A stretch of 64,000 bases of DNA from Tubulanus polymorphus. Taxonomy: Eukaryota > Animalia > Nemertea. A model generated the notes under the pieces. The model was not told where the DNA came from. It saw only the letters and a program-made list of their open reading frames with translations, and ran no database searches. Below are positions 47,547-58,233 of this stretch, in pieces (positions within the stretch are counted from its first letter, which is position 1; the number at the start of each line of letters is the position of its first letter). The stretch lies in contig NC_134030.1 of assembly GCF_964204645.1 (NCBI RefSeq), positions 5,808,778-5,872,777 on the forward strand. Reading direction: 5' to 3'. The translations under genes and the position numbers were made by a program.

Positions 47547-47638
47547 GATGCCATCAGGTTCGAATCCCTGCTGGGGTAGGATGGATAAAGCAATTAGAGT
47601 TTTAACTTCGGCTACTACTTATTTTGTGTTTTTGCAGG

Positions 47639-48742
47639 ATGTCGTGTGTAGCTGCCTGTTCGTCACGACGGATATTTGTGAAATGTTTTGCAGTTTTAAT
47701 CGCCGTGCACGTAGCTGCGTACATTATCTACGTAAACTATCCAAACATAGCCAACACCGGAGCGATATACAGCGGCAAAATTTACAAACACTTTTTCGTG
47801 AATGTGGCACATAATTCTACATTTAGTGTGACGAATCAGAGTAGGCCTACAGAGAGTGACGCTCGTATTAAACATGTCATACCATATCTTCGACAAGTAA
47901 ACGCTTCTCGTCGAATCAAGCGACGTTTTGAGTTTTCTTCACGTTGCGGTGGTGTTTGCGACGATAAAGTCGGTTTAGTTGTTATTGTTACAACTTCGGT
48001 AACGAACGTCGAGCGAAGGGAAGCGATACGGAATACTTGGGCTTCCACTGCCGTACTTAACAGCAATTCCGTCCCGGTGCGTTTCTGCTTTATCGTCGGC
48101 ACGGTATCCGACGAAAAACCGATGAAAGCGCTTCGAACTGAAAGCCAGTCGCATGGAGACATAATCCAAGCTAATTTCGTCGATACATATCGCAATCTGA
48201 CTATGAAATCGTTAGCTCTTCTTGAATGGGTCGACCGATTTTGTCCGGCCGTGAAATTCGTCTTGAAATCGGACGACGATACGCTCGTCAATGTTTCGCT
48301 TTTGCTACGTGAAATCAACAAGGTTCGGGCTAGTTCGTTCTTCTTTTGTCGTGTGCATTCAGGTGCTCCCGTTGTTCGCAACAAAAACGACAAATGGTTC
48401 GTATCCCTTGCTGAATATCGCGGCATCCACTACCCAACGTATTGCTCTGGAAGTGCCTATTCGCTCACAGGAGATATCGTCCGTGATTTACTCGAGAAAT
48501 CGCTGGAAAGTCCGCTGTTTTGGTTAGAGGATGTATACATATCTGGCATCTTGCCACGAAAGATCAACGTCAACCATGTGTCTACCAGTTTGATGCATTT
48601 TTGGCGCGAGGACCCTGAGCCATGTTCGTTGCGTCACCAAATCGTCTCTCATCGGATTACTGCGCAAGAACTCATCAAAGTATGGAAGCAAATACATGAT
48701 CCCCAACTAAGTTGCCCCATACAAAAAACACAACCTGCATAG
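47639..48742 (+). CDS. Beta-1,3-galactosyltransferase family (CAZy GT31, B3GALT1/5-like) type II Golgi protein, 367 aa, single coding exon
   Basis: N-terminal TM anchor and motifs RREAIRNTW, DTYRNLTMKS, KSDDD, YPTYCSGSAY, EDVYISG. Acceptor TTTTGCAG ends at 47637, immediately before ATG 47639. Confidence 0.92.
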   Translation: MSCVAACSSRRIFVKCFAVLIAVHVAAYIIYVNYPNIANTGAIYSGKIYKHFFVNVAHNSTFSVTNQSRPTESDARIKHVIPYLRQVNASRRIKRRFEFSSRCGGVCDDKVGLVVIVTTSVTNVERREAIRNTWASTAVLNSNSVPVRFCFIVGTVSDEKPMKALRTESQSHGDIIQANFVDTYRNLTMKSLALLEWVDRFCPAVKFVLKSDDDTLVNVSLLLREINKVRASSFFFCRVHSGAPVVRNKNDKWFVSLAEYRGIHYPTYCSGSAYSLTGDIVRDLLEKSLESPLFWLEDVYISGILPRKINVNHVSTSLMHFWREDPEPCSLRHQIVSHRITAQELIKVWKQIHDPQLSCPIQKTQPA

Positions 48743-50803
48743 AGAATCGAGCGTTCTTAATCCGTGGGAACATTTGCTATGTTAGTTATCCAAGTTAAAC
48801 TCGAGAGCAGTTTAACTTCAATTCTGGAGTCAAATAACGATCATTTGAGTTAAATGGCTTTTTAATTCCTGGGATTCCGTCATGCGACATTCCGCCAAAA
48901 ATGCACAGTCCTAAGTATGGCCATGGATGATGGACTCGAGAACGCGAGCGAGTTTTAAAAAGACTCCATTGTATGGCGCAACGGTGGACTGTATCCGTAC
49001 TCTGAACATGTTTTCTTGTTATTGAGAACCCTTATCTGATCTGAGAATTGAAGAGATTTCCATTGTCATGCCTCTCGAGATGAAGAGGGCATTTTAATTG
49101 ACTTGGTGGATTTACGATCAGTATGCTGAAAAATCTCTCCAAAAATGGATTTATACTTCATTTGTTTATACTTCTGTATCAGCTTGTATTAGAAACACAC
49201 GTAATGTATTGTTATTAAATGAATGCGCCATTTATTTCCAGTGTTTATAATGATGATATAATGGGAATTATATAACCATATTATGTATATATTTGCTATA
49301 AAATGAGTATAGTTTCAATTCTATACACGAGCAAGCGAAACGAAAATAAAAAATAAACCGTCATCGTTATTTCTGAACTAAAAGTGGGAATCGACGCTCA
49401 TCATCTTTGGGTCAAAAAAGCTGTAATCCTCTTTCAATGTAAATGACAACAGACTGAATCTTCTATGGCGCCATGGCGTCAGAGACGCGTAATCCATTAT
49501 GGTTAAGTTCATCCATCCAAGCCATCCAACTAGACCCGTAACGGACTACGCGACAGGGGAGAGAGGGAATACTTCAATGCTGATTGGAAGTATTACCGCT
49601 CCCTCGTACTACGATTGAAATTTAGTTTTTGGCAATAACTTCTGACAGAGGACGTTCGAAATGCCATAGATCACCACCGTGGCCTGGTGAAAAAATCCGT
49701 TGACCCCAATACCATTTGTACTACCCCTTAGTCCAGCGGGCTCATCACTTTCCATCCATTCATCCGTCCGTTATTCTGTCTGTAGACGGAATCCAGTTAT
49801 TTCGGGAAGCTTTGACGCTTGGGTTGTCTTGGTGGGTTTATGCAGGAGTTTCACGCTATTGATTACCGGTACATTAATTCGCCAGGGGTAAGGAATATTG
49901 AATTGTCAAGGATCTCTTCACCAAGTGAGTATGGCCTAATAGGCCCTAAATATGTTTGCGCCAGACTTCGTCCGCAGAGAGAGTCTCACGAAGGGAGCAC
50001 ACAGAAATTTGTCACTGCGATAAACATTTCATTCACACTCGAAAAACATAATGTACAAAGTAATCTTAAAATATAACAAAAGAAAATCTGTCTGCAATGA
50101 TTGATGCGCTTATTGTACAATATATTAAATTGAATTTAGTATGCGCTATAGTGTTGAATTGAATTGTTCTGGATCGGGGCTGTGTTCTGATGACATGGTA
50201 TTAATTGGAAGAAAAATTCAATTATATTGTATTCAAATAGCTAAATTCCTTCATCAAATATATACTAGTAATTTTTCTTTTATAAGCGAGACAAATACGA
50301 ATGAAACTGACTAAAAAGAGAAAATAAAGTACAAAAAATTCATTTATCAGCTAAACCTATTATCTTCTTATCTTCCCAACCCAGTACCGTACAGTGCTGC
50401 CATCTCGGACTAGAAATGGCTTCCTCATCCTCGACTTCGGTACTATTAAAATATTGTTAAAAATCGACTCTCTCTAGGGACTTCGGACCCAAATTAGATA
50501 AAGAATTAAGATGTAAGTAAACCACAAAACAAGCACTGGTATTTGGCAGGAGGCACACGGCGTAGTTTATCGATGTCAACCCCCAAGAAATTGCTATCAG
50601 TATCAATATTATTCTGTCTGCTCTGCCCTGGTTCTACTTTCTTCTATCTATCATTATCAATCATTCGAATCAATGCATGCAACGAACGTTGACGGAGTCG
50701 GGATTTATCCCCCCTCCCTCCAAGAGCCCAAACAACATGCCGACGCCAATGGCAATTAATCTTTCTAAACTAAGAATATCTATTCTCGTTTTCAGTCAGT
50801 AAA

Positions 50804-51567
50804 ATGCGGGTGAATGCCACCAGTACGGAAGCTGTGTGCGGAGTTGGTTGTTATTTGTTCGTATGGAGCGTATTTTACAAGATTCTGCGTTACGTCAGTC
50901 CGCAGCGTTCACGAGAATGGCACTGTCGAACTATCACGATGATTCATGCTATTGTCGTTGTCTGTTTGTCAGCGTGGTGCGCTTTTGTACAAGGTCCCTG
51001 GCCATTTACCGATCCTGGTAGGTTCAATGGAATACATATATATATATAAAAAAGATCGATGAAAGTATGACAATTTTCCTTGAAAACCTGCAGCCATTTT
51101 GGTTTCAACAGCGCCAGTTTTTAGGGCTGCAGATGTTAAGAGTAATACCATGACTTAAGGACTAATGCTACTGTATTAGAGTGTATGTCTATTTCAACTT
51201 GTTTCAACAGACATATTATCTGTGGTATTGCTCAATAGTCAGTGTTGTTAGCCCCTTTGGGACTTCAGGCATCACAGCTGGATGTTGCATTCACCTTTCC
51301 CCCTCTGTCCATCCAAATATTTTAGGAAGTTTTGAAGAGGCTTCAATGTCTTAATATTTTAGTTTAAATGTATGTCTCTACCCTAGACAGCCCAACAACT
51401 GGCCCGATCAGAATCAATTGATCATTTTTGTTCGCCGCAATCAGCACCTGTTTTTTGTTGCTCTATTACAGGTGGCCCAAACACTCCGCTACAAGAACTG
51501 ACAATTATGATTTGTCTCGGTTACTTTTTGTTTGATTTTGCCTGGTGTTTGCTCAATGGTACTGAAG
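50804..51567 (+). CDS. TLCD5: TLC domain protein TLCD5/TMEM136: shared coding exons 50804-51017 and 51472-51567
   Basis: EWHCRTITMIHA...GPWPFTDPG|GPNTPLQ...LGYFLFDFAWC...TEG resembles the TMEM136 N-terminal half. Phase-1 GT-AG junctions. Confidence 0.88.
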
Positions 51568-52375
51568 GTAGGTAGAGAGGGTATATATACCACGCTCCCA
51601 TGAAGTGGTATATATCATATATATATCATAGATCGCACTCAATCAAATAGATGACCTCTGCACCAAAATTTTCTGTAGACAGGATTCATTTAAACTGCAG
51701 GGGTTGCTCAAAATAATATGTCCCTCTCAAGCTTCACATTAAAAAAATTAAGGCTATGAACATTCTAGCAATTTCAGGAATTAAAAAATGCCTTCGACGC
51801 TTGGTGGATGCAGTGCAAAGTATTTCCGCTTTTATTAATTCTGACCCCCCCTTTAAAAAATTCTAGTGAAGCCACTGATGATATCTCCTTTTACTTCCTT
51901 CCATTTGATTTTCAAATCTTCAATGGGGAAGTTCATTAAAAATGAACTAATTTAGAAAAATGAAGACCTACCAGTACTGTTCATTGCCATTTGGTGGGAT
52001 TGCTGGTTTCGCGGGTTCCCCATTTAAAATGTGCTTATTAGGACTCCAGAGTCGGTAGTTAACTCACAACTTAAGAACTCGTACGTTCCACTGACTGATG
52101 GGTTTCGTGAAAAAGTAAGTTTAGAATGGTTCTTGTTGTTCTCATTCAACTCAAATAAGCTAATATCAAGCAAAAATAACCCAAACATGAGTTCGAAGCT
52201 TTTTTGTGGAACTCGTTTCTGAGCTCTATCAAAAAATGATTATCTGCATTTGATGAATCCTGACCTGTCGGTAGAATATCGATCTTTACCTTCTTCTACA
52301 CAACCCTTTTCTCCATTGTGTGTGTGTGTCATCGTGTCAATGTGAAAAATTTGCTCATATCATATCTGTTTGTAG

Positions 52376-52857
52376 GTATAGTGATGCTGTGTCACCATAT
52401 TGTTAGCATAATCGGCCTGGTCAGTGGTGTATCACTGGGCATCGGAGCCACAGAGCTAACAGCCGCCATTATGGCGTTGGAATGCACGAATCCTTTGCTT
52501 CAAATCCGGTGGTTTCTACGGGAAAGCGGGTGCAAAGCGAGCTTTAGCGCTAAAATCGTAGACGTTTTTTTCGTCATATCATTCGGCCTGATGCGCATCG
52601 TTTTCGGTACATATTTCATGTACTGTTACCTGCGACACCCGCGTCCCATCCTGGTCGGGCGCGTCGGGCTCAGCGTGTTGTACGTAATCAGCTGGATTTT
52701 CTGGTTGCAGATATTGCGATTTAGCTTTCGACGGGTAACCGTAGGTTACGGAGGCCGCAACGTCGACGACACTAAAACCAACGGAATGGCTTCACAGCGC
52801 AACAATAATAGTTCAACTTCGGGCCGCGTGGTGGCGGATGATTCGAAAAGTTTATAA
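52376..52857 (+). CDS. TLCD5: TLCD5 terminal exon copy A (predicted isoform 263 aa)
   Basis: Acceptor ATATCTGTTTGTAG|GT, phase 1. Encodes GIVMLCHH...LECTNPLLQIRWFLRESG and is open to its own stop. Confidence 0.82.
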
Positions 52858-54822
52858 TCGATACAGCGAAGCGAACTTAATCCCGTTCACTTCTGGATTA
52901 TACTCGCGCGGATTAAGCTGGTTTGGCTGTATTATTTTCCCTTCACAGTGTTCTCCACACCAGGTTTTAGAGGGGCGCCTAGATCCCTTACAGCCTCCCC
53001 TTATAAAATATCCGATGCTCGTACCAGAAGATCGCACCAAAATCAAGCTTAAGTTTCTGTATTTTTTTGGGGGGGACCGAATAAAGTCTTGCTACTTCAG
53101 CAGTTACGATGTCATACCCTTTAAAATTCCAGCGTATGGGGAACACTGCTTCGGATTATTTCTAATCGTTGTAGTTCTGGAACCGGTTCCATTATTGTCG
53201 ATTTCGAATTTTACTCAAATTTCAATAAGTCTTCAATTGAATACTGACTTTTAACTCCTTTTTGGAGAGACAACGATGGAATTTGGTCCGGTCTTTCTTT
53301 CTCTGATGAGTTACAATTGATTTTATTTTTACATTCCCTGTATCACTTTTATGTTCAATACTTATAATTTCTCATACAATCGATCCCTATGAAATCTTGA
53401 TGTCTAATGATTGCTTGCGAATGACCTTGATTTGGTATTCCATTACTTTCTGGTGTAGATGAATCATTTAAGTGTTAATGCCGTATGCTACACCTTACTC
53501 GGTGGTAGAAAACAATCTCGTGAACCAGAGTTCAATAGCAGTTTTTTGAGTTGACGACTTGGCACCGAGCGTAGATCAGTATACTGTATAAACTAGATTG
53601 TTGCACTATGGCCTAGTGCGTGTTGTACTTAACATATTTTAGAAATTGCTTTTTACCTAATATTGGTTTTTTGTACACATGTATGGAGTACTTTATTTTG
53701 AACTTATTAAGTTATTTGATTAAATGGAAGATAAATTATTTGCAGAGTATTCAAAATATTCTGGAACACCGCAGAGTAAAACTAATCATTTCTTAGCATT
53801 TGATTGACAACTCCAAGAGACATTTTATACGCTATTCCATCACTAATTGGTCATCCATTTTTGTCATATATAAAGTAATTGTACACAGTAAATCAACGAA
53901 ATGTACACCGCATCAATGATCATATTTTTGGTCAAGCTCACAACCTTTTTCCGTCCTATCAACAAACATATGTATAAACATTTTTCTATTTTGTTACTAA
54001 ACACTATTTTCTCGGTAATGAATTCTTTTTGATGAAGTTCGAATCTATACCAAAAAATGTGATGAATATGTGCTAAACTTAAAATGTGCTGAGAAGATGT
54101 AGAAGTGTAGGTCGATACAGTTGAACCTCCTTATGATGAACCTCAGTGGACTAAAAGCTACGTTTGTTAGGTTGAAAAAAGAAAAGATACTAGCTTCTGG
54201 TCACATGATGAGGTTCCGCTTCTATTCTCTATGAATTATTGAAACAAAATTTTAATTTATACACCAATGATTATGATGTGGTTGGGGGTTATTGATTATT
54301 GTAACACTTATGATTATTCTCAATAATTTTTCAAGATTTTAATTATGTACTGGTATCAACAGATAACATGTGCTTGTAGTTTTGTTAATATGGTGGAACT
54401 TGCTTAACTCGGATCATTCAGGCCAATGAAAGTTCATCAACTGTGATCTTTAGGTTATCCATACATCAATTAATTGACGAATTGATACCCGAAAGTGCTA
54501 GAGATGATTTCAAAATCTTAAAGAATTCCATCTCAGTGTGTTGAATAACAGGCATACCTGCTATAGTTACTTGTTAATATTTCACTATGTTTGACAGGCG
54601 CTTCCATCTTTCAATAGAAACGAATTTCTTCTTCAATACACCGCGATGCAGTGTACTAGCAAAGTCCATCGCCGATGTATACACTGCACTGCGGTGTAGA
54701 CGCACTGAAAGGGTTAAACTGATCCGAATTAAGCAGGTTTGACAATATCCATAGACGTAGCCAACTCACTCGCTTTTTAACTTACAATTCATCACGCTTT
54801 TGTATTGTATATCTGTTTCTAG

Positions 54823-55250
54823 GCACTCTGATGTTATTTCACCACGTGATGAGCATTATTGGGCTGTCGACCATACTATCGATCGGTACAAGCGCCGCCG
54901 AAGTGACCATCTGCATTCTAGCATCAGAAATAACTAATCCGTTCCTTCAAATTCGCTGGTTTTTACGCGAATGCGGACTGAAAGCTTCACTCGGCGCAAA
55001 AATCAACGACGTCGTTTTCGTGCTGTTGTTCGGCCAGTTTCGAATCGCGTTCGGCTCGTATTTCATGTATTACTATCTGAAAGACCCTCGTCCGATTCAA
55101 TTCGTGCGTTTCGGGCTCGGTATGCTCTACGTCGTTAGCTGGCTGTTCTGGATTCAAATCGTGAATTTTTCGTATCGAAAAATTACTCGCGGTTACAACG
55201 ACGACTATTCGTCTAGATCTCGCGACGATGTGAACTCTAAAACCCTTTGA
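54823..55250 (+). CDS. TLCD5: TLCD5 terminal exon copy B (predicted isoform 245 aa)
   Basis: Acceptor ATATCTGTTTCTAG|GC, phase 1. Encodes GTLMLFHH...SEITNPFLQIRWFLRECG and is open to its own stop. Confidence 0.82.
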
Positions 55251-56055
55251 TCTCGGTGAATGGGGTACCGGCGATGCTACTGATTCCCAACAGAATCCGC
55301 TGGATTTTTTCTTGAACTCGAATCAAAATCTAATGATATTTTCTCAAATTCTATGTACATGTATTATGTACAGAATCATGCCTCTGTGATCTCTAAAAGA
55401 ACTCATGAGATCTAAGGTAATCTGCATAGATGCGTGATTTGACGGATTTTTTTTTTGAAAGAATGGAAATTGGGATCAACGTTTGTCGTTAGTTTAAAAT
55501 GAACCGATCTTGATTGAGTACCTCTGATATCTTTGAGGTACCATGCGACTAGATAACTAGCGTGCCAGTGTACCCCGTTTTCTGTAAACCCCGGTGTCTA
55601 CCTGTACTAATGCAATGCAATCGCGTGCTAATTTATTTTGAGGTGCTGACCAATGTAATTTCACTAATCGAACGGAATATCAAATAGATGACTGCCTCAT
55701 AAATCTCCATATCATCCAACAACTCCTGGATGTCATGAAGAGATTTGTGATGGAAGGTCTATATTTTTATTTTCTGATCAGGATTTAAGTCATCAGTTAT
55801 GGTTTCGTTCTTTTAGTATGCGTGGTAGGAAGCAAGGGCATATTTTTCAGTAGTAATCCATTTATCCCTGTCGTCAGTCTTCACGGATTCCTTAATGAAT
55901 TTATTTGCTTTATTAACAAACTCTCTTTTAAAGTTTAGATTTTTACTTGCACTAGTGAAATAACCAGGCAGCAATGGTTTCACCACAAATTTTGGTGTAT
56001 TCGGTCAAAGTTGAACATTAAGTGATGCACTGTTTTTGTTTTATGTTTGTTTTAG

Positions 56056-56585
56056 GTGCGTTGATGTTGGTTCATCACGTCATGAGCATCGTCGGTCTGT
56101 CTGTGATCCTCGGTCGCGGTTATTCCGGTACGGAGCTGACCGCTTCGATTTTCGGCTCGGAATTTACGAATCCGTTGTTACAGACGCGCTGGTTTCTACG
56201 GCAGTCCGGCCGCCGGGACTCGTTAACGGCGCGCGTCGTCGATGTCGCGTTCATGACGTTGTTCGGCTTCCTGCGCATCGGAATCGGATCAAATTTGCTA
56301 TACTGCTATTTAACACACCCGCGTCCGGACTGGATCGGTCGCTCGGGCGGTATCAGTTTATACGTTGTTAGTTGGAAGTTTTGGTTGCACATCTTACGTT
56401 ACGCGTTTCGGAAACATTTCACCAAAAACATGAAACTACCCCCGACGAGGGTGGCGGCGGCTGACACGTGCTCCTATTCGGAGAACGGATGTGCCAATAA
56501 TTCTTTGCATCAAAAACCTTTCGAATCACCTGTCCATGACACTCGAAAGCGTAACATCGCATCTGGAGATGCTGATCGAAATTAA
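56056..56585 (+). CDS. TLCD5: TLCD5 terminal exon copy C, most canonical-looking (predicted isoform 279 aa)
   Basis: Acceptor TTTGTTTTAG|GT, phase 1. Encodes GALMLVHH...GYSGTE...FGSEFTNPLLQTRWFLRQSG. Confidence 0.87.
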
Positions 56586-58233
56586 ATCCAAAAGTGCACA
56601 GTACAAGTGTATATATATTATACATATATTATATTTCTATTTTTGGTACCTCTGTATATGGATATACTCTGTAACTCAAAGATACAGTTTATGTTCAGAC
56701 CAAAAAATCAAAATGTATGACCGATATCTGCTTCATGGTTGTGCAATATTAACTTAATCGTTTTATTTACTGCGTTTAGAATCCGCCTCGTTGCCCGCCG
56801 AGATTATATATATGCCTTTGCTTCTGTGGCCATACTGCTAGTGATGAAAGGGCTTCAGTCGCCGCCTAGGCCTCATCCTACTATACAAGTGCTTTCAATC
56901 GGGTTGTATGTGTCGTTTATTGCAAGCACAATTTATTGTAATGCACAGTCAAACCCACTTAATCTGGATCAGTTAAATCTGGATTTTGATCCATTCCGGA
57001 CATTATTTATGGTCCACCTGTAGATGGGATTCCTCATAAGCCACACTCTGACTTAACCTGTTCCAAATGTTGACCCATTTAGAATGGTCTAACTTGTGAA
57101 TGCGCCTATAGACTGGATTGATTTCATCGGTTCCAACAGATTAAAAGGGTTTGTACATCGATTCATAAAAACCTGGCCCCTCAGTCTTGATTTTCTTTCA
57201 ATTGCACAAGTCCTAGTAACACATTTTGTATAAAATCATGAGTTTATACGAAGATGTTACCCCAAATGATTTTATTTTGGTCGCTTTTCAGCTTTTTTAT
57301 CCTTTTCTAACATTATAACATTTTGCACGACAGTACATGCACTCTCTGCACTAACCAGATCTCATTGAGTTTTCCTGACTTGTGTTATAACCCAATTGCA
57401 TTGGGCATTCCTTCATTGGTAAATATAAGGTCAGATGATAGTTTTCAAGGTAACGTAGTCAAATATTACTTGGGCAAAGTGGAGTTTACTATTTCTGTTT
57501 ACACCTCTACTGTACTGTTTGCTTCATCTGCTTTTTAAACAGTTTTCGACGTATTTTAGTTTATACTCTATTATTGAATTTAATTTGTGTAAGGTTTTTT
57601 TTGAGTTGTTTATGAGATGTTGATTGTTAACTGTATTCCTATGCATCGAGGGAGTGAATGACACATTCGAAAACTGAACGACGATGAATGCTCTGAATCG
57701 GCCAACAGAGCTGTAAAATTCCTCCCTAAATTAGCAACCAGTAACCTGATGTGCGGGTACTTTTCTCCCAACGGAGTCACAGTATTTGTCTTAAATCTGC
57801 TGTGTAAATAAGATAGATTCATCTAAGCTTTGTTATAGATCTCAACTGAAGATTAAATTATTATCAATTATCTGCACTGTATGTAGAGGATGGTTTTCAC
57901 GCTTTTAAATAGTTGACAGATTTGAGTTGCAAACTCTGGCAAACCAACAACTGTAAAATTGGTCTTGTTGATTGAGCTTTATTATACATTTTATAATTAG
58001 GAATATGTGGAACCACAAATTTCCAAATGTTTGTCAACTTTTCTATACAAATATATAGTAGAAACTTGTGTCCTTTTGTAAAGAAAAATCTAATCAAGGT
58101 GAAAAGTAATGATAAGATTTGTTATTTGAATCAAAAGAATTTGTTGTTGTTTTGTTGAATTTCACTATCGAGGAAATTGACTAAACAAACATGCTACAAA
58201 GTATTCCCTACGATGACCATTAATGAGGATATA

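Follow-up and report, generated by a model that had tools for sequence, protein, structure and literature searches.

The locus analysed here is probably a single TLCD5-like gene of the nemertean Tubulanus polymorphus in which constant exons 1 and 2 are spliced to terminal exon A, B, or C to give three enzymes. All coordinates refer to the window, that is, the whole stretch of 64 000 nucleotides that was analysed (NCBI RefSeq assembly GCF_964204645.1, contig NC_134030.1, positions 5,808,778 to 5,872,777 of the forward strand). In the proposed mechanism, the phase-1 donor at 51567 would be joined to one member of a tandem set of three paralogous 3′ exons, each of which would supply Gly104, helices 4–7, the predicted active-site residues (His-His, Glu, Asn-Pro, Arg-Trp, and Arg), and a different cytosolic tail; the products would share a common front with helices 1–3 and carry different catalytic backs. 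The initial annotation of the locus had put forward one gene for three enzymes: the anatomy, the unique exons 1 and 2, the selection on the copies, and the junction to C agree with that proposal, whereas the junction to B was not seen. The constant front is made up as follows:

50804 to 51017, + strand: constant coding exon 1, with ATG at 50804; residues 1–71 plus 1 nt; helices 1–2 of the TLC fold
51472 to 51567, + strand: constant coding exon 2; residues 72–103 plus the first base of Gly104; helix 3

Exon 1 (214 nt) ends in the donor CTG/gtaggt, as read from its translation and splice site, and its translation is identical to residues 1–71 of the public protein P0001. It is joined without a break to a 5′UTR that reaches upstream to at least ~50570. 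Exon 2 (96 nt) is bounded by the acceptor ttacag/ and the donor GAAG/gtaggt, the latter lying at 51567 in phase 1. Transcript evidence was taken from X2, the RNA-like assembled contigs of one public run (one study, one sample). Within X2, contig 9 covers 50650–51016 plus 80 nt past the start of that stretch, the exon 1–exon 2 joint (51016>51471, GT..AG) is present, and depth is zero in intron 1 and in 51650–52249. A six-frame search of the whole 268-Mb genome returned one match to exon 1. By tblastn with E up to 100, no second copy of exon 1 or exon 2 was found in the window (best other match at E 0.16–0.57), nor was a homologous one found elsewhere in the genome; the single exons 1 and 2 and the phase-1 donor that had been described earlier are thus borne out with the right coordinates, and the tBLASTn search for extra copies that had been suggested with them came back empty. 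The exchangeable part consists of three exons:

52376 to 52857, + strand: alternative terminal exon A; Gly104 plus 159 aa; helices 4–7; 39-aa tail; stop TAA
54823 to 55250, + strand: alternative terminal exon B; Gly104 plus 141 aa; helices 4–7; 21-aa tail; stop TGA
56056 to 56585, + strand: alternative terminal exon C; Gly104 plus 175 aa; helices 4–7; 55-aa tail; stop TAA

The acceptors (ttgtag/ for A, ttctag/ for B, and ttttag/ for C) all lie at the same Gly codon, which is completed as G+GT in A, G+GC in B, and G+GT in C, and all three frames are open to their own stops. The exon starts, phase-1 acceptors, common Gly, and separate stops that had been reported from the initial reading were all confirmed, as were the product lengths of 263 (A), 245 (B), and 279 aa (C), obtained here as summed codon counts of unjoined sequences. 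The 279-aa form (exons 1+2+C) is identical to the public NCBI protein P0001, the sole publicly annotated isoform; proteins containing A and proteins containing B were both searched for in the public protein collection, and none was found. The motifs HH, E-x-T-N-P, and RWFLR were found in the translations of A, B, and C, in agreement with the HH, E-x-x-N-P, and RWFLR noted previously. A stop-containing terminal exon of this kind has three matches in the whole genome, which are A, B, and C and no others, with 54–56 % protein identity and 36–43 % nucleotide difference among them.

The tandem layout, and nothing else, would be consistent with three ordinary tandem genes or with an assembly artefact that duplicated one exon. 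Exon 1, however, matches once in 268 Mb and exon 2 once in the window, and tandem genes with homologous exons 1 and 2 each are refuted. Copies that differ at more than a third of their nucleotides are not collapsed or expanded repeats, and a second sample yielded contigs in which A, B, C, and the spacers recur with few changes; the cassette stands against the artefact that the initial annotation had considered, and either version of this explanation is scarcely credible.

Synonymous sites are saturated between the terminal-exon copies (pS 0.71–0.77), pN is 0.26–0.32 (0.26 for A–B), dN/dS is 0.15 for A–B and 0.12 for B–C, and identity by codon position follows the order 2>1>3. Since synonymous sites are saturated at a dN/dS of ~0.12–0.15, A, B, and C have all long been maintained as coding sequence. 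The initial annotation had left room for a neutral ratio; the values point to purifying selection on all copies. Exons A and B might nevertheless be leftover duplicates, used through splicing noise or only to lower the output of C as the one functional protein. Such a view accords with the public annotation, which holds the C isoform only, with C being the ortholog-like copy, and with the sufficiency of a single terminal exon in other species. It is quite improbable in view of the low A–B dN/dS at saturated sites, of frames open over 142–160 codons (0 in 20 000 random draws of local non-coding composition), of the retention of all 14 conserved family residues lying in the terminal exon (9/9 invariant plus 5/5 near-invariant in A, B, and C), of X2 contigs that cover A and B and break at both acceptors, and of an acceptor tract conserved between A and B:

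52362 to 52375, + strand: A acceptor tract, atatctgtttgtag; conserved between A and B
54809 to 54822: acceptor tract of B, atatctgtttctag, conserved with the acceptor tract of A

This tract has been kept despite the saturated synonymous sites. The direct-repeat family D2 starts 14 nt upstream of the A and B acceptors and reaches no further upstream. SNP density was also tried as a test of constraint and was rejected, because X1 is identical to the reference over 2.4 kb, introns included, and the test is confounded by haplotype structure; X2 contig 15 shows 0 differences in the B coding sequence versus 6 in its 3′ part (P ~0.07, hand arithmetic).

The exon 2>C joint (51565>56054, GT..AG, cut +2) was seen directly in X2. 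Contig 10 of the same set (52374–52911) starts at the A acceptor and carries 26 unplaced upstream letters, the same count as on the exon-2 side of the exon 2>C joint; the exon 2>A junction is strongly indicated. Contig 15 begins 2 letters ahead of exon B, at 54821 (these letters, AG, also end exon 2), and has no overhang, and no exon 2>B junction is displayed among the X2 contigs. The contig of exons 1–2 extends 2 letters past exon 2, and these agree with GT, as in A, C, or the unspliced intron, but not with the GC of B; junction words of exon 2>B are therefore rare in X2 or were removed from it. We infer that B, too, is spliced to exon 2. The junctions that the initial annotation had predicted were thus recovered to different degrees: directly for C, near-directly and by the overhang only for A, and for B as a contig break at the acceptor with no junction.

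Exon A and/or exon B could also be expressed from a start of their own or from an unrelated upstream exon, in which case the front would differ or helices 1–3 would be missing. The B contig without exon-2 letters and the GT continuation of the exon 1–2 contig are compatible with this, as are an X2 depth of 9–20 over the TE-rich A–B interval (53428–54707) and the presence of Met as the third residue of each terminal exon. This Met, however, is also conserved in single-exon orthologs and so is no sign of a start, the TLC fold requires helices 1–3, and the A–B interval is without a TLC-like or long hydrophobic ORF. Moreover, phase 1 kept at the same Gly matters only with a phase-1 donor, exon 2 is the sole homologous exon of that kind in the genome, and the overhang of the A contig matches the exon 2>C joint in length. 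A separate front for A and/or B is accordingly unlikely, and splicing of all three exons to exon 2 is preferred. The A–B interval also contains the following:

54450 to 54720, strand not assigned: highly repeated element with a boundary at ~54717, outside the coding design of the gene

In X1, X2, and X4 the depth over this element reaches thousands, and numerous loose ends lie at 54715–54721.

Candidate 3′ ends were sought by pattern scan, and one signal was located close to exon A:

53080 to 53085, + strand: AATAAA, candidate poly(A) signal of isoform A, 223 nt past the A stop

The X2 contigs end at 53154, and depth drops to 1 in 53250–53449; contigs as such cannot reveal RNA ends. Neither AATAAA nor ATTAAA occurs between the B stop and exon C, and ATTAAA is present at 56581 (overlapping the C stop) and at 57140. 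X2 coverage continues from B to the C acceptor, and X4 (same sample as X2) contains unspliced pieces spanning the B and C acceptors. Because B lacks a canonical poly(A) signal ahead of C and coverage runs from B to C, the two may belong to one long composite terminal exon within which B is an alternative 3′ splice site. A poly(A) site at 55992, where the B contig ends, was considered and rejected, since a T>C change at 55993 in the same sample accounts for the break. Of the separate poly(A) sites originally envisaged for the three exons, A alone has a canonical AATAAA close by. Under the preferred splicing scheme, the choice would be made by competition among the three acceptors, the use of A would be coupled to the proximal poly(A) site, and B transcripts would probably run on through C. 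No convincing inverted repeats turned up when the exon-2 intron was searched for docking/selector RNA pairing with the three acceptors. Separately, a 14-nt exact direct repeat was observed at 51642 and 55679 (~0.08 such pairs expected by chance, own estimate).

Membership of the TLC family was assessed with Pfam PF03798 (curated cut-off 24.6 bits). Exon A scored 38.6 bits (E 1.4e-9, profile positions 78–188/198), exon B 40.3 bits (E 4.2e-10, positions 78–190/198), and exon C 40.3 bits (positions 78–165/198); exons 1–2 alone gave no PF03798 match, as expected of such short pieces. The residues invariant in 40 homologs (H110, H111, E139, N142, P143, R148, W149, F169, and R177) are all present in A, B, and C. 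Only the C isoform (the public protein) was folded. The AF2 model had a pLDDT of 86.8 and a pTM of 0.79, and its best Foldseek matches were yeast ceramide synthase (8qtn) and human CerS6 (8qz6), with TM 0.57–0.63 and E 4e-4 to 9e-4; the C isoform is accordingly modelled with a ceramide-synthase-like multi-helix membrane TLC fold. The NCBI name of P0001 is “TLC domain-containing protein 5-like”, and the putative label TLCD5-like rests on this name plus a Capitella homolog. Judged from sequence, the gene is the sole TLCD5-type gene in the Tubulanus polymorphus genome. We know of no biochemical activity for TLCD5/TMEM136. Within the family, TLCD1 and CLN8 are lysophospholipid acyltransferases whose conserved residues are essential for activity (PMC11838012). 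The present gene resembles these two and the ceramide synthases in its Pfam TLC domain, His-His, Arg, and further conserved residues, and ceramide-synthase-like fold.

Among outside homologs, 68/71 scored best against C, and the tree was resolved as (C,(A,B)) with SH-aLRT 96 and (A,B) with SH-aLRT 99. By these comparisons C is ancestral, and A and B are sister copies derived later. One duplication gave a fast-evolving copy, which in turn duplicated to yield A and B; both events fall within the worm's own lineage. In contigs of five other organisms a single terminal exon was found, with nothing further within 2.8–10 kb downstream. An exhaustive representative search with A gave no match above 48 % identity, which leaves A without a recorded ortholog; the top match to A (P0007) was rejected as an unrelated gene model built of near-identical internal repeats.

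The arrangement suggests that the TLC fold can be recombined where helix 3 meets helix 4. More tentatively, the fold could be modular at this point and one promoter could serve three enzymes with different lipid/acyl-chain specificities, an idea to which we would give slightly less than even chances; the isoforms may differ in lipid/acyl substrate or in partners. Because the three predicted isoforms share helices 1–3 and the catalytic residues and differ at ~45 % of helix 4–7 positions, they form a comparison set, and, if the interpretation is true, no TLC-family gene would have had such a cassette described before, and the isoforms would serve as natural chimeras for mapping TLCD5 substrate choice. 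For annotation, the lesson is that stop-containing duplicate exons inside the last intron get missed, the public record listing C only.

As far as the literature consulted shows, a cassette of exchangeable terminal exons is unreported for the TLC/TLCD5 family; TLCD5/TMEM136 and the other TLC acyltransferases are described there without isoforms of this kind. The earlier remark that this reversed UGT1A design was not known to be described for the family agrees with our finding no TLC/TLCD5 report, but the design is not unprecedented, being preceded by pipe and PGRP-LC. In Drosophila pipe, one shared first exon serves ten isoforms; each of them has a sulfotransferase domain of its own, encoded in a row of tandem homologous terminal exons that are used in a mutually exclusive way (PMC3291829, PMC9013439). 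As in pipe, a constant membrane-anchoring front is combined with an exchangeable enzyme part from tandem homologous terminal exons, and the present gene would be a lineage-specific, non-insect example of that type. Pipe, however, is a Golgi type-II sulfotransferase whose whole soluble catalytic domain is swapped, whereas in the TLC enzyme a polytopic fold is cut mid-way, with helices 1–3 constant and helices 4–7 swapped, and all variable halves must therefore pack against one constant half; there are also three copies instead of ten, in a nemertean instead of an insect. In Drosophila PGRP-LC, which 3′ region is used depends on competition between RNA structures (cited in PMC9013439). The joining of a constant 5′ part to one of several alternative 3′ exon sets bearing the specificity domain is common to PGRP-LC, lola, mod(mdg4), and the present gene, but complementary docking/selector sequences were not found here, and the variable part is a catalytic membrane half where in those genes it is a binding domain. 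Tandem duplication has also produced internal exons that are mutually exclusive, such as those of the PKM and ATE1 7a/7b type (PMC9013439, PMC9741552); these are similar in their origin, same phase, use of one per mRNA, age, and purifying selection. They differ in that the exons here are terminal, with a stop and a putative 3′UTR of their own, and encode ~60 % of the protein instead of a short segment; since translation ends at the first stop, no dedicated mechanism is required for exclusivity. In UGT1A and the clustered protocadherins, every variable first exon is driven by a promoter of its own, and which one is used is decided at transcription. Those genes likewise join one of many large paralogous exons to constant exons, but the polarity is mirrored: here one promoter would be used, and the choice would fall at the 3′ splice site and/or at polyadenylation.

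The TLCD5-like gene consists of two constant coding exons followed by three tandem paralogous terminal exons, A, B and C. The elements used below are as follows:

50804-51017, + strand: exon 1, coding, constant (214 nt; ATG at 50804; donor CTG/gtaggt)
51472-51567, + strand: exon 2, coding, constant (96 nt; acceptor ttacag/; donor GAAG/gtaggt)
52376-52857, + strand: terminal exon A, open frame to its own stop
53080, + strand: AATAAA, 223 nt past the stop of A
54823-55250, + strand: terminal exon B, open frame to its own stop
56056-56585, + strand: terminal exon C, open frame to its own stop
56581 and 57140, + strand: ATTAAA (pattern scan)

Exon 2 ends in phase 1, and each terminal exon is preceded by a pyrimidine tract and TAG and completes the same Gly codon. 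On translation and splice-site inspection, all exon coordinates of the initial annotation proved exact, as did its phase-1 acceptors at a common Gly, intact frames and separate stops in A, B and C. Its product lengths (263 aa for A, 245 aa for B and 279 aa for C) agree with the predicted products, obtained as summed codon counts; the isoform sequences were kept unjoined, and terminal-exon searches were run exon by exon. The public annotation holds the C isoform only (P0001, the 279-aa protein, whose sequence equals the product of exons 1, 2 and C), and proteins containing A or B were not found there. Just upstream lies an intronless 372-aa open reading frame (47624-48742, + strand; Pfam Galactosyl_T PF01762, E 3.8e-48), predicted to be beta-1,3-galactosyltransferase-like and located on the same strand as the TLCD5-like gene.

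The copy number of the constant exons was determined by searches with their peptides. In tblastn over the whole window, exons 1 and 2 returned self-matches only (next best E 0.16-0.57), and a six-frame search of the 268-Mb genome gave one match for exon 1 and three for the terminal exon, all at this locus. The single copy of exons 1-2 proposed initially is thereby borne out, and an array of three ordinary tandem genes is ruled out, exon 1 being unique in the genome and exon 2 in the window. Duplication by the assembly is likewise ruled out, because the copies differ from one another at 36-43% of nucleotides and are reproduced in contigs of a second sample.

Selection on A, B and C was compared over 120 aligned codons. 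Synonymous differences were saturated (pS 0.71-0.77, with pN 0.26-0.32), and identity by codon position followed the coding order 2>1>3. The dN/dS ratios that had been proposed as a check were low and non-neutral (A-B 0.15; B-C 0.12). Since A and B are mutual closest relatives, the low ratio between them argues that both are under constraint. None of 20,000 sequences drawn at the local non-coding composition contained an open frame of 142 or 160 codons. Directly ahead of their acceptors, A and B share a 14-nt tract with a single mismatch, even though homology stops beyond it and synonymous sites are randomised; this likeness is compatible with selection on the acceptors of the two exons.

In Pfam, A, B and C all hit the TLC domain PF03798 (profile positions 78 to 165-190 of 198; 38.6-40.3 bits versus a cut-off of 24.6). 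An alignment of 40 full-length homologs contains ten invariant columns, nine of which fall within the terminal exon (H110, H111, E139, N142, P143, R148, W149, F169 and R177). A, B and C retain all nine, in keeping with the shared TLC motifs noted initially, together with five near-invariant residues. AlphaFold2 modelled the public C isoform with confidence (pLDDT 86.8, pTM 0.79), and the structures that the model resembles most are those of yeast ceramide synthase and human CerS6 (TM 0.57-0.63). Exons 1-2 supply helices 5-31, 37-63 and 77-100, and the terminal exon supplies 105-124 (with the His-His pair), 128-153, 160-190 and 196-229, followed by a disordered tail; by this model, an exon swap would exchange four of the seven helices together with essentially all of the conserved active-site residues. 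Two proteins of the same family, TLCD1 and CLN8, are acyl-CoA-dependent lysophospholipid acyltransferases in which conserved residues are essential (PMC11838012). In the literature searched, TLCD5 is uncharacterised and is named mainly as a GWAS locus.

Splice junctions were sought in public sequencing runs, seen as assembled contigs aligned to the window. Run X1 is DNA-like (a single contig through the introns, flat depth), and run X2, made in the same study from a different sample, is cDNA-like by depth, which is zero in intron 1 and at 51650-52249. X2 contains the exon 1-exon 2 junction (joint 51016>51471, GT..AG) and the exon 2-C junction (joint 51565>56054, GT..AG, cut shifted by 2, with 26 letters on the exon-2 side). 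Contig 10 of X2 (564 nt) aligns at 52374-52911 and carries 26 extra upstream letters that do not fit the genome, so that contig and genome diverge at the A acceptor. In size this overhang equals the exon-2 side of the C junction, the pattern expected if two branches leave one graph node where exon 2 ends, and this geometry makes the evidence for an exon 2-A junction near-direct. Contig 15 (1172 nt) begins at 54821, that is, at the B acceptor minus AG, letters common to exon 2 and the intron, where spliced and unspliced graph paths would be expected to merge; it carries no upstream letters. The X2 exon 1-2 contig runs two letters past exon 2, and these fit GT (A, C or intron), not GC (B). These observations imply that the B acceptor is used, putatively with exon 2 as its upstream partner, and the 2>B junction is at best minor in this sample. 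Run X4, from the same sample, contains unspliced pieces spanning the B and C acceptors. Among the three junctions predicted initially, 51567>56056 is thus seen directly in X2, the evidence for that to A is near-direct, and B is represented by a contig starting at its acceptor.

At the 3' ends, X2 depth drops after 53154, past the AATAAA at 53080, and a pattern scan found no AATAAA or ATTAAA between the B stop and exon C. The end of contig 15 at 55992 was rejected as an RNA end, because the adjoining T>C difference at 55993 in the same sample marks a graph bubble; X2 coverage extends past this contig to the C acceptor. In the most economical model, A would act as an alternative last exon of the classical kind, served by a proximal poly(A) site, and B transcripts probably continue through C and use its poly(A) site, in which case B would amount to an alternative 3' splice site in one long composite terminal exon. 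Whether B ends early or runs through C makes no difference to the protein. The three poly(A) sites envisaged initially were thus overstated, although A does have a canonical signal nearby. X2 depth is 9-20 at 53428-54707, most of the A-B spacer, with none in the exon 2-A spacer; this could reflect read-through past A's first poly(A) signal or a distinct transcript on either strand.

Very high contig depth (up to ~65,000) with many loose ends was seen in all runs at 51250-51449, 52850-53250 and 54450-54720, with a loose-end boundary at ~54717. All three stretches are interspersed repeats, located in intron 1, 3' of exon A and within the A-B interval. A "go back" joint, 54717>52946, occurs in DNA-like and RNA-like runs alike, pointing to a shared repeat family for two of them. 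Separately, an exact 14-nt direct repeat, ATCAAATAGATGAC, lies at 51642-51655 (75 nt past the exon-2 donor) and 55679-55692 (364 nt ahead of the C acceptor); we estimate that chance alone would yield about 0.08 pairs of this kind in 6.7 kb, and the repeat could be either coincidental or an intronic splicing element.

Of 71 outside homologs, 68 gave their highest score against C. A tree built from 71 terminal-exon peptides (quick method, 125 columns, deep forks unresolved) places A, B and C in a single clade (SH-aLRT 96), within which A and B are sisters (99); the A+B stem is long (0.75) and the end branches measure 0.47, 0.47 and 0.38. In contigs of five other organisms the three-exon layout and the intron position are the same, with a single terminal exon each and no second one within 2.8-10 kb downstream, and among 1.84 billion representatives no protein resembling A or B exceeded 48% identity. 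Together these results indicate that the cassette was born in the Tubulanus polymorphus lineage by two successive tandem exon duplications, old enough for silent-site saturation. The top match of the exon A peptide among representative proteins, P0007 (483 aa, from another organism), is a gene model with a TLC domain in which the helix 3-6 region recurs as three to four near-identical internal repeats; the gene call probably spans a mis-assembly or a tandem duplication of very recent date. The Tubulanus polymorphus cassette, in contrast, is old and diverged.

We consider it quite probable that one gene at this locus encodes three alternative catalytic halves, the chief uncertainty being the use of B. 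The initial interpretation was largely right, and its remark that it knew of no such cassette in this family agrees with our literature search, in which none was found for TLCD5 or another non-CerS TLC protein. Besides the poly(A) sites, it overstated the novelty of the design: constant 5' exons with tandem homologous terminal exons, one per mRNA, are established (PMC3291829, PMC9013439), and tandem exon duplication is their standard origin (PMC9013439, PMC9741552). Drosophila pipe already uses this arrangement in ten isoforms that share a common first exon and each carry their own sulfotransferase domain (PMC3291829), as does PGRP-LC, which chooses among 3' variable regions (cited in PMC9013439).
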